NCBI GenBank assembly: GCA_904063045.1
Contig: CAJFCJ010000052.1
Coordinates: forward strand, 28,110 to 92,109
From: Dimorphilus gyrociliatus
Taxonomy: Eukaryota > Animalia > Annelida
Direction of reading: 5' to 3'
Length of the DNA stretch: 64,000 bases
In this document: in pieces, positions 61-49,750 of the stretch
Layout: each line of letters opens with the position of its first letter
Position numbering within the stretch: the first letter of the stretch is position 1
The notes under the pieces: generated by a model
What the model saw: the letters and a program-made list of their open reading frames with translations, nothing else
Told to the model about the DNA's origin: nothing
Databases searched by the model: none
Program-made: the position numbers and the translations under genes

Positions 61-2616
61 CTAGAAACAGTTATTACATTTTCTTATGATAGCAATTCTG
101 GAATGTTTTTCAGGCAAAATATTCGTAATTACATCTTTAATAATGATTAATTTCTGAAATTTTGAAATATTTGTCAAGTTAATTGATGGAATTTGATTAA
201 ATGATAAATCAAGGTGTAAAACTGAAAATTTGCCGAACAGAATAGAATTCAATTGTTTTAAAAAGTTTCCTTTACCGTAGAATATTTGTAATTTTAAAAG
301 GTAGTCAACACTTTTCCTATAAAAAATACCCTTGTCTTGTGTAACTGATATCATGAATCACTAAATTTTGAATATTTCTAACAACATCATCAACACTCAT
401 TAAACTTTGAGTTAAATTTTAAAAAGTATCGTAATGTTTTTCAATTTTTTTAAGAAGAAAATTGAAAATTGTCGCATTTTTTATGTTTATTAAATACAAC
501 TTTTTCGCGAATAATCGTTTTTCATAATTTCATGAAATTTTCATTTGAAGTTTTAAAATTGCATTCAATTTCAAAACGAATTCTGCAGACACATTTTATT
601 GGACATTTGAAAGGTTTACAATACAATTCGTCGCTTCCATCTATTTGTCCATCGCAAACTTGAGTTTTACTTAATAAGATTCCATCTTTACAGGAAAAAT
701 ATCCAATTGGATGAAAGAATTCGTCTAAGAAATTTTTTTTTCAATAGTGAAATGACGTCATCAATGAATTTTTATCTATACCACATCATACCACAGAAAT
801 TGTCATCGTCTCCATAATCGCAGTGTTTTTCTCCATCGCATACATTTTTAATTGGAATACAAAAATTAGCAACATAGCATTGATATTCTCCGATATTACA
901 CTCAGTTTTATAACAATTGTATAATTGTTTAAATGAATAATGGATTTCTGATGTTAATTCACACATAGAACTCAACTTTAGGTGACAATTCTCTCCATTT
1001 TCACAGCGAAGGGCGCTGAAATACTTCGAAAAGACAAGGCATTCCTCCTTTATCATATCATTCATTTGGTTGATTATTCTAGTCAGCTACATAATAATTT
1101 TTTACTTGCAAAGAATCCATTTTGTATTCGAGTCCAATAAAAATGTGGATAATTTTCACATACAGCTGCTGTTTCGTCATTGTATCCTGTACAATTCGAT
1201 CTAACATCGCATTTGTAAGACTCATCTAAGCATCTATTATCGCAATGAAACCAACCAGATTGGCAATCTTCTTCATGACAGTCTTCATCAGAAAAGTCAA
1301 TACAATTTCTTTACCTTTTTATCTATCGTTTTTCATTATACATTGGTCATTTTTACAAAGAAATCTATTTCCTAAATTACAATTTCTGTAAACTAGAAAA
1401 AAAAAATTGTTGTTTTTTTTTAATTAATTATTATCTGTTTAAGGAAAAATAAAAAAGAGATTTATTTAACTGCAACCTTTCTCATCTTGACCATCTGGGC
1501 AATCTTTGATATGATTGCAAACTCTATATTTGAAAATTCTTTGTTAATTTTTCTGTGAAAAAAAATCGAAAAAACGGAAAATATAAAAAAGTAGGTCAAC
1601 CGACGATGCGTTTAAAAAAATAACATGTCTTACTAATATCAATAGTTTTTTGGCAGATAACTATAGATAATATTAAACCGTTATATTGAATAGATAAAAA
1701 TTTTGATTTCATATTAAGAGCAGACAATATCGATTGGATCCAATTTCTTTTATTGTATGAAAACATTGCCTATTTCAATGGTTTTGTCAATTGTTTATTG
1801 GTTTTAAAAAAAATTGCGTTTATTTCTTTACTTTAAAATATTACGATCAAATGAAGAGCCTATCATATAGAATGGGGTTTTTTTATCAACAGCTTTCTGA
1901 AATTTAGGGGAAGTTCTCCTTAATGGATTATCTGTTGAGAAATTGTACAAAAAAATGGGAAAAATGTTGAAGTTTCATTCCATACCCAATGCTATAAAAT
2001 CTTCATGAACATTTTTCCAATTATCACCTTTTAAATCACTTCTATCATCTTCTTTTTTCAATATTGAAGGTATAACAATATTTTGAATGAAAAGTCGTTC
2101 CTTCAATGAGGACAATTCAAGAACTGATAGGTTGTATTTTTTACAGAAATGTGTTGCTTTGTTCTAAGAACTTTAAAACATTTATTCTGAAATTTATAAG
2201 TGTTTGACTGCAGACAAATATCATTATTGTTATCTAATTGATTAGAATTGAAAGAAAGGAATTGAAAAAACTTATCTATTTCATTAAAAATAAAACAAAA
2301 GACAATTTACTAATCACACTTGTATCTGAACTATTATAACAATGAAATTTTGGAATATATTTATCAGCCCTTTCAAACCATTCAACATCATTTGGATATA
2401 TATATATATATAGCAATCAGAGAGATTTTTTGCAACTTTACAATCAATTTCCAATTCAACAGGATAAAGATAATTCAAATCTCTTATTATTTCATCAACC
2501 TCTAAATCAATTTCATCATGTTTATATCCAAAACGACGACAGATAATCTGATAATCATTCACATATAGTGGTCGACAAAAAAACCCAGACACCATAAATT
2601 TTGATAGGCCGAACAT
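61..2616 (-). pseudogene. GRL101-like receptor paralog 1, N-terminal part (SRCR-like, LDLa repeats, LRR); continues off the window start and appears decayed
   Basis: 2314-2616 SRCR-like (YQIICRRFGY...EIDC). LDLa repeats at ~1150-1390 (containing an in-frame stop) and 772-1065 (CNIGEYQCYVANFCIPIKNVCDGEKHCDYGDDD). LRR at 61-354 (VLHLDLSFNQI). Same domain order as the 7231-14961 gene. Confidence 0.65.
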
Positions 2617-2809
2617 TATAAATCTTTTTCACCAGCAAAAAAGATTCTTTTTTTTATTTTTCAAGTATAAAATATTAGTTTAAGGTTTGATATATACATG
2701 AGTTTCTTTTAAATATCATTTAGATAAGTTTTCACATAAATGTTTTTGTTTTCTTATTTGGCCATGAGACATTATTACTCGGATGATGGTTTGGGGATTA
2801 ATATTTTTA

Positions 2810-3400
2810 TTATTTTTGAATATGACAACCCTCATTTACAATACATTTACTAATCCTACCTCCCATCCCTGCATATAAATTTAGTAGCAAGTCAGGATTT
2901 TGAGTTATAACCTGGTATGAACATTTTTTTATTTTCTCCCACAGTTCATCCCCAGATTGAAATTGTGCCCCATCATAAACTAAATTTTTTGTCAGGTGCC
3001 ACATATTTTCTATAGGGCTCAGGTCAGGGCTCTTTGCTGGCCAATCAATTGGATTGATACCATTCATTCTAAAGGCCCTCCTAGTTGCTCTTGCTGTGGC
3101 AGCCTGTGTTATCTTGTTGGAAGATGTAATTCCTGCCCATTTTGAGTGATATCTCTTCAATGACAGGAAGAACATCTTCCACAACAAAACAGCTATAATT
3201 TTTGACTTATCCTCCAAACTTCAAATACCCCATCTGAGGTTATTAATCCCCACACCATCACTCCACCTCTTCCCATATTTTTAGTGACTCTAAAATTTTT
3301 TTCACCATCTTTTGTCCACATTCTGAAATCATCAGGCCCACTCAGAGAGAATCTGGCCTTGTCTGTGAAAATCACTCTTGACCAGTCCAGATTTTCAGCA
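2810..3400 (-). mobile_element. Tc1-like DDE transposase remnant (frameshifted), with imperfect inverted repeats at ~2750-2780 and ~3603-3632
   Basis: LDWSRVIFTDKARF, GGVMVWG, FQQDN and WPAKSPDLSPIENMW motifs spread over different frames. TTCTTATTTGGCCATGAGACATTATTAC is nearly the reverse complement of GTTAATAACGTCTCATGACCAAATAAAGAA. Confidence 0.9.
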
Positions 3401-4379
3401 ATTGTTTTGAGGCCTAACCCTGTTCTAGAATCCTAACGTCTTTACCCCATGCAGTAATTAAGTAAATAGAATTTAAAGTTAACTACAGTAATTAAAATAG
3501 ATCAAAAGTGATTACATAACTTTGAAAATTAGTTTGGTTAAAAAAAATTTCTGTTTAGGATGTTAATTTGAATCCAAAACTGGAAACAAAACGGATGTGC
3601 GGTTAATAACGTCTCATGACCAAATAAAGAAAAAATTAATTAAAATTATTAAAAAAAATTTTCCTATTAGTATTCACAAATATGATAATTTTGTCATTTT
3701 TTTTTAATATTACATAAATATAACCCTTTATCAATGTAAATTTCCTAAAAAAACTAATTTCAAACAAAAAAACACCACTATATATACATATATAAATTTA
3801 TATAACTATATATATATACTTATAATTCTAGTGAAGAACCTTGATTTGTTTTGAAGAAAGATTTGAAAAAATAACAGAATTCCATGTTTTATTATAGCAA
3901 ATTGCTAAATATCCATATTGTCCAACATCAAGTGTAGATTAAGTAGAATTGTATTCATTACTTTGATTTTTTAGGTAAATTGAATCTCTTAATTGAAATT
4001 TATCATCTAAGTTTAAAGTAAAGTTCAAATGCTATCCATCCATAATTTCTACGTGTTGATCTAAAAAACTAGAAAAAAAACTACACCTTCATTTGTACAA
4101 TTTTCCATTTCACATTTTTGAAAAATGCTTAAATAGTTAGAATTAATTAATTGGTAGGATTCTTATTATTGAATATAGGATTGTTAAAATCACACGAGAT
4201 GCATACAAATAGTAGTTTCTTTTTTGTAAAATAAAACAAGTGGGATTCATCCAAATTATTATAGTAAACTCCCTTGATATGATCTTTCAGTCATCCAAAC
4301 AGCTAATAATCATTACTGTATGGGGGATACAGGCATATAGAATATTTCTATGCTTTCCTTTCATATTCATTAATTTTGC

Positions 4380-4644
4380 GAGCAGCTTATATCTGGATCC
4401 AAGGACCTGGGAAGATAACCTGGAAACAATCCATCTACTCCTCAACATTGGAAGACAGTTTGGTAATTTGGCAACCTGCTATTACGAACTATCTATTCTG
4501 CTATTGAACTCTCATATTACTACTTGCTTAAGTATTATTATTGCGAATAAACTGTTTTAATTTAAACATTTGTTTAAAGGTTCGAGTAGAACCAGTATTG
4601 TTATAACTTGCAAACGCATTGATTTTGCCAGCAAGAGCAGTACA
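4380..4644 (+). mobile_element. Partial LTR (3' part) of the Gypsy family at 58054
   Basis: Near-identical to the 3' ~270 bp of the 58054-58688 LTR; ends GCAAGAGCAGTACA. Confidence 0.9.
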
Positions 4645-4879
4645 ATATCTATGAGGAAACTTTTTAACTTAAGTTCACATATATTTTTGAACTTTAGTTT
4701 CTAGCTAAAATCGTAAACACTTTAACCATGGTTAGTGGGTATCCTTTAAAACCACGAAATTAGTCAATTTTTAATGGAAGCTCACAAGTATTTGAACATG
4801 GGAAAGAATATTTTTTTCTACATGGGTAAATTGAGTATCATTTTTCTTTCAATGAGTTATGCTTATTTTTTTCATTTTA

Positions 4880-5560
4880 GCTCTGATAATTGCGAATCAA
4901 ATTGCAAAAGCTCAAGCTAATGGTTCTGGTAATACAAGCTTTTATTTACCTTCCAATAAAGTGTCCAGCCAAAATGTAAATTGTACATCAGTGGCTACGG
5001 TCCTTTGAATGGTTGTAACATCATCTCTTTTTGTAATACCACTTGCAGCAGTATTAATTATTGCTTGTGTAGCTAAATGCAGATGATAAGCCTTTTGATT
5101 ACATTACTGGAATTATTCCTATCATGTACCTATTTGGAGGATCTTCTCAAAAAATCAAACATTTTAACACAGGAATAGTTAAATTATTTATTGTGCGTTT
5201 TCTCACTAATTTATTGTCTTATCTCACAGTTTTAAATATAAACAGATAAATTACAACTGATTGTAATACTTAAATATTGGAATTCCATCCATATTTATTT
5301 CAAAATCTAAATCTCTTCAATGCTTTAGTCATATACTCTCTTTATATCTGGAAGCCTTTCTTCTTAGTGATTCTAATTCTGGCAAGTCTTCAATATTGTC
5401 GTGAAATTTAAGGATAATATCTTCTGCTATTCTTTTGTTCAGTTGTTTCATTATCACCATTTGCATTTCCTTCAAATCTATTCCTGATTCAAAAACTTTT
5501 TCCAGATTTCCAAGTAGGTCAAAATGCCCTTAAATGGGCCAGCAATAGACTTGTTCATTT
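4880..5560 (-). pseudogene. Degenerate DNA-transposon transposase remnant (possibly CMC/EnSpm-Mirage type)
   Basis: Broken frames contain INMDGIPIFK and an IC(D)LATQAIIN-like segment; many stops. Confidence 0.35.
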
Positions 5561-35484: not shown

Positions 35485-36224
35485 GTAAAAATGAAACAAA
35501 CTCTTGTAGCTTTTTATTCTCTTTCTATTAAATTGTTCAACAATTTCTTTCAATTCTATCCCATAATTCCTACTAATTAGTAATTGAACATCTATCATAT
35601 ACAGCATATTTAATCATATGTCAAACTTTTTCTATGGGTGACAGGTTAGGAGAATATATAGATTTTTGCTAAGATGAACAATATTCCATAAATAATTTAA
35701 ACAGTATAAATTTATAAAAGATGCTTCTGGAAAATGTGTATTAGTCATAGATTTATTCAATTCTACTTTATCAAAAATATAATCTAGAATATTCAAAATA
35801 AATTTGACCTCACTGTTTCAAAATCCTGCTTTTCAGAGAGGAGGTTCATTTGGGTTGCATAATTTTTTTCTTCCGTTTTTAAATTCTCTTCTTGGTGGGC
35901 AATCTCTTTACCATTTCTCTTTCGTTTTGAATCATAGAGATGATTTCGTCATAGGGAATCTCCCAGATTATAATTAAAAGGTATAAAAATGGTCAATTCT
36001 AACTCTCATACTGGCAGTTAGTCTTTTTTACCAAAAATCATTTATTAATGATTACTAATTGTGCTTATACACATTGTATTGACAGATTGTTAAAAAACGA
36101 AAAAAATATGCCTAAAAGGTGGGAGTTTCTACTTTCGTGTTATATCAAAATGGTGAAATTTTTTATCTAATATTTCTTTTATAGAAAAGCGAAAAAACAA
36201 ACAAGTTGACAACACCTTATCACT

Positions 36225-38213
36225 ATGATAGATGATCAGTATTTGTTTAAATTACAACAGACAACAAACCTCCAACTTCTAAAATCAGAAATTACTGTAA
36301 TATTAAAATAGATGAACAGCATTTTTCTCGAATAAGTAACTTTCTTTCTCTCCAGGAATGCATTCGTCAATTGACAATGTTTACTTTGTTTGATCAAGTA
36401 GAAAAAAATGTAAATTTCTTTAAGGTAACGCTAAAAAAATAAAAACACAGACATTTACTTATAAAGACTTCTTCCTCAAAGATATTTATTAAAGAAGTTA
36501 ATGGAATAGTAAACAGAACTCAACATGTGATATCCATCTTTCTTGGAGAGTGTGATAGGTTAAAAAATGAGGAAAGAAACTTTTTTGTAATATCAGTAAA
36601 TCATATAAATGCACTGGATAATGTGTAAGTCAATAATTGCCATTTAAAAAGTCTTGTACAATTTTTAGAATATGTTTTAATATATTCATAAATCCAGAAT
36701 GTCTGAATTCATTAAATCAATACAACACTTTGATATGATCATACAAGACATGACTGAAAATGCAAAAATCTTGAAGTATTCTGATACTCTGAATTGTAAA
36801 GAGTTTTTTATGGAAAAACAGACTTTAATGACTTTAAATGTCGAACTAAAAACAGCTAAAGATACCCTATTTGTTGCCTTGCAGAAGCTAATAAGCCAAT
36901 TTCTTTTTATCCTGTTACCAACAACTGAAACTATCAAATTCGAAAATAGAGCTACTACCACAAATAATCAGTTTGCTTTACGTTTAATGTGCAGTGACAC
37001 TTTGAATGTGACTTGTTCTACAGGAATTTTCCAAATAAACGTTATGGAGAAGAACCAAACATTGAACGAAGCAGAAGGGCAATGGGTTGAACTTTCCTTT
37101 GAACTTCACAAAAACACTCCAATAAAAAAAATCATTTCGAATGGAATGGTTAATTTTCAATTTGATTTGAGCTTGTGTAAAACATCTTCAGGTAAAGATA
37201 GGCATAAATCAGATAAGGATAGTTCAGTTGCATCATTCAGATATTATTTAAGTATTAAATTGGAAAAATTTGAGTGGAATAATCGGGAATTTTATTTGCA
37301 TATCAATACGAGAATGTTTGCAATCATATCACAAACATCGCAAATTTATCAAGGTAAAGCCAATATATGGTGGTTTAACTTCTTTAGAGAAGACACTGAG
37401 AAACCTTGGAATGAATTTAAGAAAGTTCTGTTGGAATATTACCATACTAATACTGGAAAACGTTTAACATCTCAGCAAATCAACTATTTGAGACACAGAT
37501 TCAGTAAGGGTTTAACATTTCACAAACTAAATGATCACTTTTTCTTTATCTTTACTAATGTTGGAAAATGACGACAGTATTATCTCTTTTCATGATTTCT
37601 TAGTGGTATAAACAGAATATTATTCTAAAAATTTCATTGCACTTACCATGCTTTTTTCTATATAAAATAGAAAAAATATCCAGAGAAGCCCATAAAAGGA
37701 GAAAAAGCTCAAAAAACAAATTTTGAAAGGTTTTTTTTCAATTATTCAATCAATTTTATTGCGTTTCTTAATTAGATGAAGGAAATGATTATAATGCAAA
37801 TCGTGTGGAGTATCGAGTTTTTCTCGGAGCAAAACGGTATAACAATTACACTAATATGATAGGATGATTGCTTACTCGTAATGTTTTAAATTTCCAGTAA
37901 TCAAGATAACTTCATCCCGGAATTTGATGGAAGGCAAAGCGTAATTGAGCCATGTACACCTGATGTAAAAAATAAACCTCTTTCTGTTGGGCAAAACTTA
38001 CTTTCGCCTACGCCTGCTGTCCAAAGCTCCCCTACCGCATTCTCTTTAGAAAATAGTTTTTCCCCACAACCCAATAGTAATTTGTTTACAAGTCCGATGT
38101 CAGATTGTAACGTTTTGAAAAGCTTGCGTCTCCAACAACATAGTTCGGATGTATTGGAAACTGATGATTCTTTTAAACAATTTGTTGACAGTTTTGATGT
38201 GTCTTTCGAATAA
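36225..38213 (+). CDS. STAT-like transcription factor (partial coiled coil, DNA-binding, linker) lacking SH2 and most of the N-terminal domain
   Basis: Phase-consistent exons 36225-36296, 36356-~36423, ~36466-36625, 36698-37503, 37776-37836 and 37898-38213. TRMFAIISQTSQIYQGKANIWWFN resembles STAT5 SLPVVVIVHGSQ...ATVLWDN. KPWNEFKKVL...KRLTSQQINYLRHRF resembles the linker VPW..L..AL...RGLT.ENL.FL..KL. S/P-rich acidic tail. Confidence 0.7.
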
Positions 38214-38394
38214 CCTTAATGATAAGGTAAACTATCACTCTGCAGATTTTTTATTTGATCCTATTAATTCAATACAAATTGATTTTTGTGTAACAAAAAC
38301 TACAAGTCATGCATACATGTTCCAATCTATAAAAATATGTTGCATTTTTAGTGTATGTGAGTGTCTCTTCAAGGCAAATTTAAAATAAACGATG

Positions 38395-38490
38395 GTCATT
38401 ATTTTACACCTTTTATATAGCCCTGATTTGACACCATCTGATAATTATCTTTTTGGAAGATTGAAAAGTCATATCAGAGGTATAAACTAT
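38395..38490 (+). mobile_element. Mariner transposase fragment
   Basis: LHLLYSPDLTPSDNYLFGRLKSHIRG matches the mariner YSPDLAPSDY motif. Confidence 0.8.
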
Positions 38491-41400
38491 TAAAATTGTT
38501 TTATTTAAAACACGATATCTTCAAAAAAGAAATAACCCTGTCTTAAAATTGAATTGTGATCAAATTCTCTATTAAAACAGATTCGAGTTTTGTGCAAACA
38601 TTCAATAGTTTGTAAAATAGTTTTTATACAAAAGAAAAATTCAAAATTGTCATGAAAATACTTTTCAAATGTAAACTGATTTCTTTCAATTTCAGTATTC
38701 TTTTTGAAATGATGAAATTGTATCATTCCTGCTACTTCATTTTTTCCTCTCATTTCATTTTGGAAACATTTTAAAACTGTGAGTTTGTGGTAAAACAAAA
38801 CAAAAATAAAAACAAGTTCCTACTTAAATTGAAGAAAAATGAAAAAGAAAATGCATCAAACTTTTTATAATATTTTTTTCAATATTTTTTTCAACTTCAT
38901 TTTTTCTACAAAAAAAGAAAAGAGAAAAAGACTTTTGTCAGTAAACTGAAGGTTTTTTTTGTATATATTTAAAAATTTTTACATTCTCTCCCTTTTTTCT
39001 TTAGTCCTTTTAGCTTTATTATAAATTTCACCAAATATATAAATTATTGGATTTACAGTGGAATTTAATGGTATAAAAATTAATATTAACCAATTATATG
39101 CTTCATGGTTTATTGGTAAATTTTTAAATAATATAAAGATCAATAAGATCAGTACACGAGTTGATCACATGTTTATTAGGTAGGCAAATTTCAACGTTGG
39201 ATGAATAAATCCAAATAAAACAGCATAGTTCAAAGAATAAACTATACACGACCTTGACATTTGTCAAATTTTTAAAAAGTATTTTAATATTGTTCAAGGG
39301 AAAAACTGTATTATTCAAATGAAATTGTTGAACATTGTCGATTCGTCAGACAACAAATAACAATCTTGAAAACCATCGCATTCAATATCCGATGTAAAAC
39401 ATTCTCCATCGCAAAAATACTGTTGATTACCTTTACATTCTGTACAATTTAAGAGTTAGGTAACTAAGTGTATAACATAAATAATATATTAATGATGAAT
39501 CAACTGTTTTGGTCCATACGCAATGGTTCTCATCGGAACTATCAAAGCAATTTCGTTCATTGTTACATATGAAATCTTTACGAATACATTGATTGTTATT
39601 ACATTTTCTGTTACAATAAAAAAATAGACACGCATTTAAATATTTGAAAAGCAAAAGCAAAATAAAAACTCACTTAAAACCTTCGATGCATTCTTGGTAT
39701 TCTGAAGAGAAAAAATGAATTACTCTTTTTCTTCAAAAAATCAACAAACTGACTGCAAAATTTTTCATCCAATTTATTGTGACAATCAAATACAAAATTA
39801 CAAACAAATTGGTATTGAATGATTTGAGTGTTATCACAATAAAAACACAATTTGTATTAGTAGCACACTTCAATTCGTCATCTTTATCTTTACAATCCGA
39901 ATATCCATCACACAAGTATAAAATGTTAATACAAACCTTTGAGGAGGTGCATAGAAAACTATTTAATGGACATTTAGAAAAATTTCCAATGGATAATAAA
40001 TCATTTATTTCCATTCCAAATTTTGTTCCTGAATTAAAATGATTTAAGTTGTTTTGGAAGAAATTATTAATAATTTTTTTTCTTGACCTACTAATTCAAA
40101 ACAGAAAAAATATTTAAATAATCTTCCTGTACAAGATGTTCCAAATGCATAGATATTTTTTACACGATTATCATAACTACCCACAGCATGGCAATCAATT
40201 TGTGGATCTTCAGATGAAAAATGACGATCTTGTATTCTATGAGTTAAACCGCTTGAGTATACTCTATGAAGATGACCTCTTTTATCTCTCGAATTGATTA
40301 GAACTATTATAAGATGTTTTTTATTGTTTGGTGTTTGTGTCTAGAATTATAATTCATTTTCAAAATATTTTTACCACTCGGAATTTCTTGGGATGTCCAC
40401 TATACAGCTAAAATGAAAAAAAAGTGCAAATTGACACTACTCTCAAAATATCTTATTCTCCTTCCAACCCTAACCCTGACAACAGTTGACCTTAATTCCA
40501 TCTGTCTTATTGGCTATTGATGGATTTTTCTTCTAGTCAACTATAATATTCATTTAAAAAAAAAAACCTTGGTGAATGTAATCTTTTGCCATGTCATTAG
40601 ATAGATACGATAACGATAATAGATATCTAAAGACAAAAATTTGTCCAGCTCCGTCGAATATTGTTAAATTATTCCTTTTGCATCTTTCATTGATTTCATT
40701 TATCGATGTCAAATATTTCGATTTAAACATATAAAAACAGTAATCTTGGTATAATAGGCCTTTTTCCTGGGAACAATCTAAAAATTGTTGGGTTAGGGTT
40801 AATTATTATTGTATGTCTTCAAATACAAGCAACCTTTAGAGTATTTTCTATTATCGCATTCGATATATGGTTGAAAATTAACATTAGCTTCAAAACCATA
40901 ATTTCTAAGCACAAGTTTATTACATTAACAGATTATTCTAACTTTTGATATTAAAATCTCTCTCTCTCTCTCTTTACCTTCTTCTATTATCACCCAAGTT
41001 TTTGATTAGAGTTGGATTTTTTTTAAACTGTGAAAACAAAAGAAAAAGTGAAAAAAAAACATAGAAGTTAGGCTTTTGACATTTAAATATTAACAATTTT
41101 GGGTGAATCGCTTAATTTGCGTCTAAACTATTATTTTTATTACAGGAAAATGAAAATAGACTATACGAAAAGTATTCCCTTGTTTTAAATTGTTTTCCAA
41201 ATTTTCCGTATTTATATCCAAAATATTTGCAAACAACTTCAATCACGTGTTGGTATAAATATAAAGGATTTATATTTGACCAATCATCTTCATAATAGAT
41301 TTGTAAGACACCTTTAAAACTTTTTTGTTTCTTTCTAATTCTAAGTTTTCTCCTATAAAGCACCCCATCTTTTAATAATGACCCATGTCTGGAATGGAAT

Positions 41401-44109: not shown

Positions 44110-47100
44110 ATGAATTTACATAATCTTAGTAGTAATGAAAAATTGTCTCTTAATTACTACAAGGAAAATATTAAAGATTTACTTAAAGCTCCATCAGCCT
44201 TTTATAGATTGTCCACAAAATTGGACTATTTAAAAATATTAAATACTGATGACAAGCATGAACTACAAAAGCAATATGATGGTGGGCAAAAAAATTTGGC
44301 AATATCTTCAATTTTTGAAAGTTTGTTCCAGCTAAATTTTTGTGATATTTGGGAAATTTTTTTTGATATGGATAATCTGAATTGTGAAAGATTAGCAAAG
44401 TGTTTACATAACAGAGAGATAGCATGGCAACAATTGATTTTTGATACTAAAATACAAAGACAAAAACAATTTACAACAATTCCATTACTCCCTTTTACAA
44501 AATTTGAAGTCAAAATATCAGATATTATAACATCTATTGAAATATCTGAAGTACGTAAAGTTGATATAATTGATTGGGAATTACAGAAAACAGAATTTGA
44601 TTATCAAAATTTCTATAAAATATTTTATACAGAATTCAAAAAGATTTTAATACAAGGAAAACCTGGAATAGGTAAAAGTGTACAGGTTAAATATCTTCTT
44701 TACAAATGGGCAAATGAACAATGGAAAGTCGATTCTCAAAAATTATGTCTCTTCATTATTTTAAGAAAGGTTAAACAAGATTCAAGCATCTACCAAGAAA
44801 TAATTGAACAAAATTTCAAAAATATTCCCTACATCAATGAAAATATAGTGGAATCAATGTTTATTGAAAAGAGAAATGATGTTGTCCTCTTTCTTGATGG
44901 GGCTGATGAGTTATATCAAGCAAATCACCCTCTATATACTTTCTTAGAAGATCCAATATGTAATATTCAAACTGTAATATGGTCTCGTAAATGGAGAGCT
45001 AAGGAATTAAATTGTAAATGTGATATAGTATTTGAATTAACAGGCTGGAATCCTTTTCAAATGACATCATTCTTTCGAAAATGCTTCAATGAGGAGGATA
45101 TTGAAAAATCTTTGGAATTTCAAGAAAGTGTAGTACTTAAAAATCAAAAAATTAACAGCCTGTGCAATATTCCATTATTGGCTATGATATTATTTCATGT
45201 ATGGAAGGAAAAAGAAGAATCTTTTTATGATAAATCTCTTTATGAAAATTATCAAGATATAATAAATATTGCACAAGCAAAACATGGATGCATTGCAATA
45301 AATAATGATGCTGAATTACAAACATTTTACGAACTTTGTCTCAGAAATCTATCACAAAACAAAATTCTTCTAGATGACAAAAACCTAATTGAACTTATTG
45401 AGACAAATTTTAAATGTATATTGCAAATTATTCCTCTTCCAACCAACCAAGTTGAGTTACAATTCTACCATTTATCCTTTCAAGAGTTTTTTGCAGCTAA
45501 ATTTCTAATAACAAAAGTTCAAGAAGTAACAAAGAAAAAAAGATTTTTCCTATGTGAATTTTTCTTTTCATCCAAAAACAGTATGAATAGCCTATTTGAA
45601 GGACTAACTAACGTAAATCTTTTTAATGTTATGGAATTTATACAACATTATTCTTCAGATGTTTTTCAGAAAATTCTTATACATTTTAAAGTTGCAAAAA
45701 ATATGTTTGACTTTAGCAACAATTTAATGAACTTTCTACAAAATGGTTTAGAAACAGATAATGTATTGGAATTACAGAATGAAACTTTAAGTGATGATAT
45801 CCTCAAGATTATCTTTATTAAATTTGGCAAAAATTTAGAGAAGATTATACTGATTGACACATTTGTAAATTTAAAATTAATGATTGATTGCTGTTGTAAA
45901 TATTGTACTAAATTGAGATCTGTAACAGTAAAAGGTTCAGAAGTTACTTATAATAATGAAATATTAACAGAAGATCTATTTTTGGAAAATATTTTCCATT
46001 CACAAATTATAAAATATTTAGAAAGAATAGAGATTGGGAATCAATTTTTGGCTGTGAAAGAAAATAGTTTTTTTGGGAATTTATTTGGATATTTTTGCAG
46101 ATTTACAATTATCTATTCTTCTAAATATATTACAGAATTTATCGATGAATCATTCGACTCAAAAAACTATTTTACAAACATAAAAATTAAATTCTTTGAT
46201 GGTTTGACTCTATTAAAAAGACTGGTTATTGGAAATAAAAAATTTGGAGGAATTGGTCAGAAACGTTTTTTATCAATGATAGAAAAAAAGCTACAGAACA
46301 AACCATTTAGAAAGTTTGAATCATATAACTGTGAAATTATTAATCTGGATATTAATATTTTGGATAAATATCACACACTAATTACAAATCAATATTTTCA
46401 AACACCTATTGGAGGAAAAAAACATAATGAAGAGTTTCCAAATGGATATATCTCTCTTAAAATTGAAAGTAAAAGCCTTTTGACCATTACTTATTCAAAT
46501 CAGAAAAAAAGAATAGTATGGTATTCTGTCATAAAGAACCTGTTTTCAACGGTTATCTTTATTCATCAAATGGCTACTTAAAAGGAAGCCCTGCAAAATT
46601 GAATCTTTACACCTAGTTGGACATTACAGAGATATCTATTCGATAATTCAAATATTTATTAAAGCTGAGAGTCATCTCCTCAGTTTTACAAAAGAGTTAA
46701 ACTTGACTCATTTTAAAATCACAACTAAAATTGAATTTGGTCAATTTATTAGCACCATTAAACTGCTACCTTTGTTAACCTACATTAGCTTAGTAAATGT
46801 ACAAAATGTAAAAGATTGTTTACAACCAATTCTACATGAATTTAATAGAAATTTGACCACCTTGGAACATATATATTGTGACTCCTGTTATTTGACACCA
46901 GTTGAAGCGCAGATATTGGGCCAACTCCTGGAACAAACTAAACATTTGAAGACACTGAATTTGTCAAACAACAAACTGATAAAAGATGGCTTTGAAGCAA
47001 TTTGTCTTAGACTAAAACCTTCTTCCAAAATATTTGAGAGAATTAATGTACAAAACTGTAATCTCAATCAGACACATGCAAATTCTTTTGCAGAGTTACT

Positions 47101-49750
47101 AAGATACTGTTCTAGTTTAGTGTACATCAATTTATCAGGAAATCCAAACATGCACAGAGGACTTTCAATGATCTTTGAAGAGTTACACCAATCTTCAAAA
47201 ACATTAAAAGAGATTAGAGTCAGTAACTGTAGCTTAACTATTGAAGAAGGAAATTCATTGGGAAACTTACTTAAAAAGTGTTCACATATAACAGAAATTG
47301 ACTTGTCATGGAATAAGCATATGGGTAAATCATTTGTAAAAATTATAGAAGGATTAAAATCATCTTTCGAAACTTTGAAAACAGTTAATGTTCATGAGTG
47401 TAATTTGAAAAGGGAACAATGGGAATCATTTAGCAATTTATTAAAAGTATGTTCTCATTTAAAAGATATAGACTTATCATGGAAAACAAATGTAAGCTAC
47501 TCATTTAAAGAAATATTTGACAGATTAAAATTTTCTGCAAACAGCTTGCAAAGAGTTAATGTCCAGGTAGGAAATTTAAATTTAGAAGAAAGGAGTTCTT
47601 TGGCAAAAATGTTTATGAATTGTTCACATATAAAAAGTATTTCTTTGCATGGTAATAAATATATTTATAAATCATTTGAAGAAATACTCGAAGGATTAGA
47701 GTCATCATCAAATACTTTGCAAATTGTTGACCTCAGCTGTTGCTGCTTAAATGATGAACAAGGGAAATCTTTGGGTGAAATTTTCAAAAAGTGTTCTCTT
47801 TTGCAGGACATTAATTTGAGGTCTAATAAAAATATTAGTGAATCATTTAAAGAAATTTTTCATTCATTAGGGTCCTCTTCAGAAAAATTGGAAAAAATTG
47901 ACTTCAGTGACTGCCATTTAAATGAAGAAAATGGATGGTCTTTGGAAAGATTATTCAAAAAATGTTCGCAAATAAAATATATTAACTTGGGAGAAAATAC
48001 TAGTATGACTCAATCTTTGGACGGTGTATTTAAAGCATTAGCTTCATCATCAGAAACAATCGAAAAGATTCTTCTTCATAAATGTAAATTAACAGAAAAA
48101 AATGGAAAATCTTTAGAAAAGTTATTAAAAAAATGTTCACATATAAAAGACATTAACTTAGGAGAAAATGGCACTATGGGTAAATCTTTGAAGGATGTCT
48201 TTAAATCATTAGCATCAACATCAGGGACTTTGGAAAAGATTTTTATTCACAAATGTAATTTAACTGAGAAAGAAGGAAAATCTTTGGGAAGATTACTCAA
48301 AGTGTGTTCATTTATAACAGACATTAATTTGGGAATTAACAGTCATATGAGCAAATCATTTGCAGATATTTTTGTTGGATTGGAATCATCCTCAGATACA
48401 TTGCAAAAGCTAAATGTTAGGCACTGTAATTTAAATGAAAAAAGAAGGAAATGTTTGAGTAGATTACTGAAAAAGTGTTCACACATAGAAGACATAAACT
48501 TTGAAGCTAATTGGTCTATTGGTGAATTATTTGAAGAAATTTTTCATGGATTGAAATCATCCTCAGATACTTTGCAAAGGTTAAATGTTGGGCACTGCAA
48601 TTTAAATGAAGAACAAGGGATGTTTTTGGGTGAATTACTCAAAAGGTGTTCACACATAGAAGACATAAACTTTGAAGGTAATTGGACTATGGGTAAATCA
48701 CTTGAAGAAGTGTTTCAAGCATTGGAATCATCCTCAGACGCTTTGCAAAAGCTAAATATTAGGCACTGTAATTTAAATACAAGACAAGGTAAATTTCTTG
48801 TTAAATTACTCAAAAAGTGTTCACACATTAAAGACATTAATTTGGCAGGAAATAAAAATATCAGTGAATTTTTTGAAATAGTATTTCTAGAATTAGAATC
48901 ATCAGCATTTGCTTTACAAAAGCTCAATGTTACGAACTGTGATTTAAATAAAAGACAAGGGAAATTTCTTGTTAAATTACTCAAAAAGTGCTCACAGATA
49001 GAAGACATTAATTTGACAGCTAATATATGTATTGGTAAATACTTCGAAGGAGTATTTCAAGCATTAGAATCATCTTTACATACTTTGCAAAGACTTGATG
49101 TGACTAAATGTTTTTTAAAAAAGGAACAAGGGAAATCTTTGGGAAAATTACTCAAAAAGTGTCAACGAATAGGAAACATCAATTTGACAGGGAATAATCA
49201 TATTGGTGAATCATTGGAAGAAGTATTTCAAGGATTAGAATCATCTTCAAATACTTTGCAAAGACTTAATGTTACTGAATGTTCTTTAAAAGAGGAACAA
49301 GGAAAATCTTTGGGAAAATTACTTAAAATGTGTTTACATTTAAAAGACATTGATTTGTCATGGAATAGATGTATTGGTGTATCATTGAAAAAAGTATTTC
49401 AAGGGTTAGAATCATCTTCAAATACTTTGGAAAGACTTAATGTTAGTAACTGTTCTTTGAATGAAGAACAAGGGAAATCTTTGGGAAAATTACTTAAAAA
49501 GTGTTTACATTTAAAAGACATTAATTTGTCATGGAATAGATGTATTGGTGAATCATTGGAAAAAGTATTTCAAGGATTAATATCATCATCAGGTACTTTG
49601 AAAAAGCTTAATGTTAGTAACTGTTCTTTATATGAAACAAAAGGAAAATCTTTGGGAAAATTACTCAAAAATTGTTTACATTTAGAAGATATTAATTTGT
49701 CATTTAATAGATTTTCTGATGACGCTTTTGAAGAAATACTCCAAGGATAG
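44110..49750 (+). CDS. Intronless NLR (death-fold-like, NACHT, about 35 RI-type LRRs) split by one +1 frameshift at ~46535-46581
   Basis: Walker A ILIQGKPGIGKS; Walker B LFLDGADEL; CNIPLLAMIL; WHD FYHLSFQEFFAA. The LRR frame is open from 46535, overlapping the NACHT ORF end. The LRRs have a 57-aa (171-bp) period. Confidence 0.9.

Follow-up and report, generated by a model that had tools for sequence, protein, structure and literature searches.

A STAT-like gene of Dimorphilus gyrociliatus that has lost its SH2 exon, and the divergent gene family to which it belongs

We investigated a STAT-like gene in a stretch of 64,000 nucleotides (nt) from the annelid Dimorphilus gyrociliatus (assembly GCA_904063045.1, contig CAJFCJ010000052.1, positions 28,110 to 92,109 of the forward strand). 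This stretch, AT-rich animal DNA of about 29% G+C, is called the window throughout, and positions refer to it; in our genome scans it is G000:C52:28110-92109. The gene is a member of a multi-copy, fast-evolving and very divergent STAT-like family of D. gyrociliatus. In the window copy a genomic deletion of about 500 nt took the second half of the linker together with the whole SH2 exon. An earlier reading of the DNA, made from its letters alone and called here the original prediction, had described an apparently intact gene that splices around a missing SH2 domain. We lean slightly towards a different reading, in which the window copy belongs to a birth-and-death family, was disabled not long ago while transcription went on, and is heading towards a pseudogene.

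Results

The SH2 exon was removed by a deletion

A six-frame search of the 77.9-Mb assembly of D. gyrociliatus (349 contigs, the scope of all our genome scans) with exon 4 of the gene returned five full paralogues, 54-56% identical to it (coordinates in Table 1), and two fragments. All five paralogues carry three extra exons, 5a, 5b and 5c, between the equivalent of exon 4 and the exon with the D-Y-N-A..Y motif, hereafter the Tyr exon. Exon 5a reads LENDDS.IS..., and exon 5b reads KKYPER...NFTPWYWF... and encodes the second half of the STAT linker. The third, 5c (YGFISKGYAERIL...GTFLVRFAESR...; about 120 amino acids, aa), is an SH2 domain and scores above the Pfam SH2 cut-off in each of the five (21.6-28.9 bits). 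The splicing of these exons is confirmed by the public proteins P0002, P0010, P0011 and P0012, and one paralogue encodes exactly P0002, which is NCBI CAD5126544.1 (DgyrCDS14645).

When the window copy is aligned with the DNA of the five paralogues, it has a single gap of 493-507 nt that opens within exon 5b (after ...ACAAATTT, window 37723) and closes at the final base of exon 5c. Lost are the 3' part of 5b, with the FTPWxWF motif of the second linker half, an intron, and all of the SH2 exon. An RNA contig crosses the deletion junction at 37723/37724, which confirms it independently of the assembly. The 272 nt between exon 4 and the Tyr exon (37504-37775), which had been taken for a plain intron, turn out to be what remains around this junction. 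They hold, in order, the old intron 4, a remnant of 5a (37559-37605), the old intron between 5a and 5b, the first 53 nt of 5b (37671-37723), and the end of the intron that came after the SH2 exon. The acceptor of 5a reads AA in the window (37557-58) as opposed to AG in all five paralogues. The original prediction was correct that the interval has no SH2 motif: with all frames checked, SH2-like sequence was found neither in 37504-37775 nor elsewhere in the gene.

A relative from another organism also has an SH2-like exon. It lies on a 10.5-kb contig assembled in Logan from SRR23372228 (L011, positions 3429-5450) and comprises an open reading frame (ORF) resembling exon 4, an SH2-like exon with GSFIIRFAESK, which escapes Pfam, and a DYRAECAAY exon. 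It follows from this relative that possession of SH2 is ancestral in the family, and that the family predates D. gyrociliatus.

Table 1. Exons and remnant of the window copy (window positions) and the SH2-bearing paralogues (contig positions).
Feature	Position	Strand	Description and evidence
First exon	36084..36118	+	Ancestral start ATG 36108-36110 (MPK, equivalent to MSK of the paralogues)
Exon 1	36185..36296	+	RNA contigs over 36193-36297; splice 36296>36356; DNA alignment with paralogues
Exon 2	36356..36424	+	Coiled-coil region; RNA contig 3 has exactly these ends and the joint from 36296
Exon 3	36482..36624	+	Coiled-coil region; 48-64% identity to paralogue exons; boundaries conserved
Exon 4	36698..37503	+	End of coiled coil, divergent STAT DNA-binding domain, first linker half (...QINYLRHRF)
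Remnant region	37504..37775	+	Alignment with five paralogues; RNA contigs unbroken at both proposed splice sites
Tyr exon	37776..37836	+	D-Y-N-A-x-x-V-x-Y motif, candidate phosphotyrosine segment; splice 37836>37898 seen in RNA
Last exon	37898..38213	+	S/P-rich acidic tail; motifs FIPEF.G, EP.TP, LQQHS.EVLETD; stop 38211-38213
Paralogue L004	G000:C59:101017-104802		With SH2
Paralogue L005	C120:83442-87254		With SH2
Paralogue L006	C9:179086-182883		With SH2
Paralogues L007, L008	C78:18974-22750, 45023-48799		With SH2

The exon chain and the broken start

The original prediction held that six phase-consistent exons give an open frame, and this is borne out: starting at ATG 36225 and skipping 37504-37775, the chain is 1467 nt long and reads through 488 codons without a stop in our local translation. 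The skip keeps the frame because exon 4 ends in phase 1 and the Tyr exon begins in phase 1, and the donor of exon 4 (CA/GTAAGG) is intact, as is the acceptor at 37774-75 together with its pyrimidine tract. The chain itself was placed correctly, but its exon ends lay 1-2 nt off those supported by RNA. Exon 2 aligns with the paralogues without gaps, and exon 4 is where RNA contig 4 begins (36698). Exon 3 has an RNA contig depth of 0, a kind of hole that proves nothing. The D-Y-N-A motif of the Tyr exon is kept in all paralogues and in the relative from the other organism.

The gene is not intact at its 5' end. A first exon upstream of the predicted chain is joined by an RNA contig from 36118 to 36185 over a GT..AG intron; its ATG and donor are kept in all five paralogues and agree with how the annotated proteins P0002 and P0010 begin. 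Reading from ATG 36108, the frame is lost in exon 1, where the window has a 2-nt insertion near 36226 relative to the paralogues, and the ancestral start is cut off from the frame of the body. The first start for the body frame is ATG 36225, which stands directly after, or overlaps, a short upstream ORF; the start of the original model was thus the first ATG past the frame break. A run of A at 36192-36197 has six A in the genome and five in the RNA contig, and a TGA closes the frame in either version. This difference is either an assembly homopolymer error or a polymorphism, and it alters which short upstream ORF precedes ATG 36225.

Downstream, the 3' untranslated region reaches at least 38511 (RNA contig 5). 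Another possible frameshift, close to where the tail ends (about 38190-38213), would remove a last acidic motif, but the pairwise alignments are too ambiguous to claim it. The 3' untranslated region also contains, at 38392-38493, a remnant of the C-terminus of a mariner-type transposase (..LLYSPDLTPSDNYLFGRLK..); a repeat-like RNA contig meets the gene at 38444-38481 only, within the area of this remnant, and has loose ends on both sides.

Transcripts and public annotation read into the remnant

The RNA evidence comes from the only public run in which the locus was found (X1 of 2017; assembled contigs whose kind is not on record), at a depth of about 8. We take it to be RNA because its contigs skip 36297-36355 and 37837-37897 at GT..AG borders. 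Contig 4 is unbroken from the acceptor of exon 4 at 36698 to 37598, across the proposed donor, and contig 5, which begins at 37646, crosses first the 5b remnant, then the deletion junction, then the proposed acceptor, and at 37836 is spliced to 37898-38511. Between the two lies a 47-nt hole in coverage (37599-37645). The joint 37503>37776, on which the in-frame SH2-less STAT of the original prediction depended, is not reported among the RNA-like contigs of this run; apart from the hole, the contigs cover the stretch together with the exons. Intron 1, where spliced and unspliced forms coexist, illustrates how the contigs respond to alternative joints: they break at its junction, and no such break occurs at 37503 or 37776. 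This suggests that a skipped form is at best minor in that sample.

Past the donor at 37503/37504 the read-through frame ends at TGA 37569-37571, and the Tyr exon and acidic tail then lie downstream of the stop, as 3' untranslated region. A spliced intron follows 266 nt after this TGA. A 290-aa ORF at 36699-37571 is exactly the protein recorded for this contig in NCBI, UniRef and nr; since this product ends at 37571, the public annotation too reads through the donor. A search for assembled contigs that encode the 290-aa product returned no record. RNA and public product therefore both run to the stop at 37569-71 in place of the predicted splice. Among proteins of 160-507 aa in a collection of 5.8 billion, none has the sequence of the joined exons, a weak negative as this genome's records may be left out of it. 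The other introns of the gene measure 57-73 nt, compared with the 272 nt of the proposed one.

Kinship with STATs

Database, Pfam and structure searches were done exon by exon, and joined frames were translated and compared in local scripts. The original prediction had recommended HMMER searches. Pfam STAT_linker matches exon 4 below threshold (16.8 bits, cut-off 27; profile positions 9-44 of 78), STAT_bind and STAT_alpha do not match exon 4, which is what the Pfam scan covered, and SH2 is absent. A genome scan with PF02864 did not find the locus. Chance was taken to explain the Pfam matches to Retrotrans_gag and Arc (E 0.008-0.06), which overlap the linker helices.

A profile built from the family only (six exon-4 proteins) and run against 1.84 billion representatives reaches further. 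It returned seven proteins, namely the family itself, P0002, two unnamed proteins from Logan assemblies, and annelid STATs (E 1.4e-6 and 3.5e-6), among them KAI0232091.1 of Lamellibrachia satsuma, which its source names STAT1-alpha/beta. The annelid matches fall on the C-terminal part of the DNA-binding domain and the linker, the matching position, and the best row of the Protein Data Bank (PDB) for this profile is STAT2, again at the matching position between DNA-binding domain and linker (E 0.088). Alignment of the family profile with the genome's own STAT by hhalign is weak (E 0.002, but a probability of 14%). In a phmmer search of the PDB with exon 4 no STAT was found, and the Arc capsid and C4BP in that search are chance rows. 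A match of 1.7e-30 between the profile of alignment A3 and STAT5 was not used; it is circular, as A3 includes canonical STATs.

Structure prediction, which the original prediction had proposed for the spliced protein, was done for exon 4. AlphaFold2 gave an unusable model from the family alignment of 6 sequences (predicted local distance difference test, pLDDT, 44.5) and a pLDDT of 57.9 from 11 sequences; the latter model has a beta-sandwich over residues 65-213. Foldseek returned nothing at E <= 0.001 for this low-confidence model, with STAT2, STAT6 and STAT3 among weak rows only, and a second fold comparison returned only generic immunoglobulin-like (Ig-like) sandwiches (Z <= 7). A sandwich is modelled at low pLDDT, with generic matches only.

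The N-terminal STAT_int domain is absent, and so is a long coiled coil of the STAT_alpha type, with no Pfam match on the helices of exon 4. From ATG 36225 about 160 residues precede the DNA-binding domain, and about 185 do so in the annotated paralogues (start MSKRN..). The original prediction correctly noted the missing N-terminal domain, but this holds for the whole paralogue family. The kinship with STATs is real but remote, and it is supported by the SH2-bearing paralogues, whose domains stand in canonical order, by the family-only profile, and by the STAT2 row.

Selection on the window copy

For exons 1-4 we aligned 350 codons of the window copy and four distinct paralogues and fitted a purpose-written branch model by maximum likelihood on the tree (WIN, L004, ((L005, L007), L006)), with WIN for the window copy. 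A single ratio of nonsynonymous to synonymous substitution (dN/dS, omega) is estimated at 0.48. With the window branch set free, omega is 0.84 there versus 0.43 elsewhere (twice the log-likelihood difference, 2dlnL, 5.61; p about 0.018). An omega of 1 on the window branch lowers the fit by only 0.38 (2dlnL) and is not rejected; for all four SH2-bearing paralogues that were tested, omega = 1 is rejected (2dlnL 5.4-14.6). Of 138 columns without variation among the other four sequences, the window copy keeps 110 (0.80); the corresponding values for the others are 0.83-0.93, with L004 at 0.83.

Two features of an unprocessed pseudogene of a duplicated gene are present, namely lesions that disable the gene relative to its paralogues (the 5' break, the 5a acceptor, the deletion, and the premature stop) and a dN/dS near 1; a third, the build-up of stops and frameshifts inside the former exons, is not seen. 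The original prediction had named absence of expression together with a dN/dS near 1 as telling against it. Omega cannot be distinguished from 1, and the locus is transcribed. The lesions appear young relative to the age of the copy, since the former exons still have an open frame and retain the family motifs.

The family and the other STATs of the genome

The paralogues share one architecture: coiled coil, DNA-binding domain, linker, SH2, Tyr motif and acidic tail, with no N-terminal domain. Their DNA-binding domain goes unrecognized by Pfam. In the public annotation the family is left unnamed, and our literature searches returned no description of it, nor of a STAT that lacks SH2. With an Arg-containing FLVRFAES pocket and a conserved Tyr exon, the SH2-bearing members are plausibly regulated by phosphotyrosine, judging from their sequences.

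The two paralogues on C78, which lie about 26 kb apart, encode identical proteins over exons 1-4, and their SH2 exons and tails clearly differ. L007 (DgyrCDS14803, 537 aa) has a deletion in 5b and an early stop in the tail. The pattern of this pair looks like partial gene conversion, or like a recent partial duplication followed by decay. The public model of L008 (P0011, DgyrCDS14808) appears to read through the intron between Tyr exon and tail, which adds about 22 residues (..YINFYPFKKLDNCLLFLLKNF..) that the other copies do not have. Both fragments found with exon 4 are dead. One (L009, G000:C121:22693-25965) retains nothing but the 3' half of its exon-4 equivalent, beyond which the sequence is unrelated; the other (L010, C177:55628-58744) is a short piece with an internal TAG.

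The original prediction had advised looking for a canonical STAT and a JAK elsewhere in the genome, and the search was rewarded on both counts, in the second case with a likely candidate. The PF02864 scan found a canonical STAT on C6 (L001, C6:2.19 Mb; 143 bits, with GTFMLRFS) and a second, divergent STAT on C9, where L002 (G000:C9:2044982-2048350, minus strand), with a STAT_bind match of 32 bits and the stretches ..IVNQPPQILKV.. and ..TLIKHVTQTVDALGTIFWFNLFG.., makes a third STAT type in this genome once the family is counted. The likely JAK is at C7:1268400-1272300 (L014, G000:C7:1268400-1278399, about 80-3890), where a weak match to a JAK-type FERM_F1 (20-22 bits) is followed by a kinase-like domain (47.9 bits, N-lobe) and this by a tyrosine kinase domain (160 bits, HRDLAARN).

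Discussion

The reading towards which we lean, a paralogue disabled recently and still transcribed, builds on changes that are seen directly. A deletion of about 500 nt removed the second linker half and the SH2 exon, the acceptor of 5a mutated from AG to AA, and the ancestral start went out of frame. Transcription continues, with the 272-nt leftover retained in the RNA seen and the frame closing at TGA 37569-71. What could still be translated would be a product of at most 385 aa from ATG 36225 (290 aa in the public annotation), with the coiled coil, the DNA-binding domain and half the linker, and devoid of SH2, Tyr motif and activation tail. Given the short upstream ORF and the spliced intron past the stop, the transcript would be a likely target of nonsense-mediated decay. 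Decay elsewhere in the family, in the form of the two dead fragments and of L007 with its 5b deletion and early tail stop, supports this reading.

Several observations weigh against it. The locus is transcribed, and the RNA basis for saying how is thin, consisting of one run at a depth of about 8, with contigs that drop rare isoforms and with the hole at 37599-37645. The interval around omega on the window branch is wide (about 0.51-1.5). Of the 17 family-invariant columns in the Tyr exon and tail, 15 are kept, and the splice sites of these exons are functional, which fits continued use as well as recent loss. Inside the former exons there is no stop or frameshift in 488 codons. Taking the rate at which mutations create stops in this AT-rich sequence, and a branch about 0.18-0.20 per site long, we estimate that if stops had been tolerated for more than about 20-25% of the branch, the probability of finding all 488 codons open would be below 0.05.

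An alternative is that the SH2-less paralogue has been kept as a working, phosphotyrosine-independent protein, either as the read-through product of coiled coil and DNA-binding domain or as a minor skipped form. We regard this as unlikely, though it deserves to be taken seriously; such a natural STAT without SH2 could modulate the SH2-bearing sister proteins by serving, for instance, as a decoy or as partner in an antiparallel dimer. The dominant-negative role suggested in the original prediction is possible for a protein other than the one it described, one made of coiled coil and DNA-binding domain (385 or 290 aa). In its read-through form, which we consider rather improbable, this truncated STAT without SH2 would act free of phosphotyrosine, e.g., as a DNA decoy or by pairing with SH2-bearing paralogues through contacts of the coiled coil and DNA-binding domain. 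Its transcript is present, its ORF is what the public record gives as product, exons 1-4 keep an open frame for about 363 codons despite the AT-rich genome, the share of family-invariant columns retained is close to that of L004, and the raised omega could also mean a change of function. However, the start of the gene is cut off and a short upstream ORF stands ahead of the body, the stop in front of the spliced intron predicts nonsense-mediated decay, omega is not distinguishable from 1, and the downstream exons are still conserved, which makes the event too young for selection on a new form to be visible. No STAT is known to work without its SH2 domain.

The joining of exon 4 to 37776 that the original prediction proposed would yield an SH2-less STAT of 488 aa with Tyr motif and acidic tail. 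Both splice sites are intact, every intron involved is in phase 1 so that the frame holds, and the downstream exons are open with their family motifs; but no such joint is reported, contigs 4 and 5 cross both sites, so that any such form would be minor in that run, the public coding sequence reads through, the joined protein was not met in the protein collection (with the reservation given above), and the intron would be several times longer than any other of the gene. We therefore find this form slightly less probable again than the truncated one. That the gene is no relative of STATs, and its exon 4 resembles them by chance or convergence, is very improbable. The absence of Pfam STAT_bind and STAT_alpha matches, the phmmer search of the PDB without a STAT, the poor structure models and the generic Ig-like sandwich of the fold search speak for it, but the paralogues, at 54-56% identity, go on to FTPWxWF and the SH2 motif GTFLVRFAES in canonical STAT order, and the family-only profile reaches annelid STATs, with STAT2 as its best PDB row.

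The window copy is probably in itself an ordinary step in gene death, and it serves mainly as a caution that an open, phase-consistent exon chain can mask a deletion, a retained remnant and a broken start. Were the truncated protein used, the copy would offer a rare experiment of nature on the abilities of a STAT that has no SH2. Its setting may outweigh the copy itself: the genome has a canonical STAT, a likely JAK, a second divergent STAT, and at least five SH2-bearing copies of the family under a dN/dS of about 0.43. A lineage-specific birth-and-death expansion of STATs of this kind has not been described so far, and the family has almost no relatives in public data. Immune-gene expansions have been reported for the D. 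gyrociliatus genome (PMC7854359), and the expansion of the STAT-like family may be linked to them.

Among known systems, the closest to the window copy are its own SH2-bearing paralogues (DgyrCDS14645, DgyrCDS7166, DgyrCDS14808 and DgyrCDS14803), with which it shares exon boundaries, phases, the start exon, the D-Y-N-A..Y exon and the acidic tail motifs, and to which it is 54-56% identical over exons 1-4. It differs from them in the missing 500 nt or so, the lost 5a acceptor, the broken 5' frame, and the higher dN/dS. With canonical metazoan STATs (that on C6, and human STAT1-6) it has in common the order of coiled coil, putatively Ig-like DNA-binding domain and linker, and a signature at the last strand of the DNA-binding domain and the first linker helices (SQTSQ / W..F / PW..L / G..L...Y L). 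In contrast to these, the window copy has neither N-terminal domain nor SH2 and only half a linker, its identity to them is about 17-18%, and its DNA-binding domain is too divergent for Pfam STAT_bind. The nearest named relatives by the family profile form an annelid STAT group (including KAI0232091.1 and the metagenomic P0005), whose SH2 (GTFLLRFSESSIEAS..) resembles that of the Dimorphilus family (GTFLVRFAESRIEAT..). This group keeps SH2 and a full linker, and over about 100 residues it is 25-30% identical to the window exon.

Naturally truncated STATs are known: STAT1-beta and STAT3-beta do not have the activation tail, and Drosophila STAT92E has an N-terminally truncated form. These isoforms arise from regulated splicing or alternative starts, and all keep SH2 and the phosphotyrosine site. 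Like the predicted product of the window copy they are shortened STATs that could interfere with full-length partners; unlike them, the window copy has had its SH2 deleted from the genome and is truncated by a retained remnant with a stop. With transcribed unprocessed pseudogenes it shares several lesions, relaxed constraint, ongoing transcription, and a premature stop with an intron downstream. It differs from these in having as yet no stop or frameshift inside its former exons.

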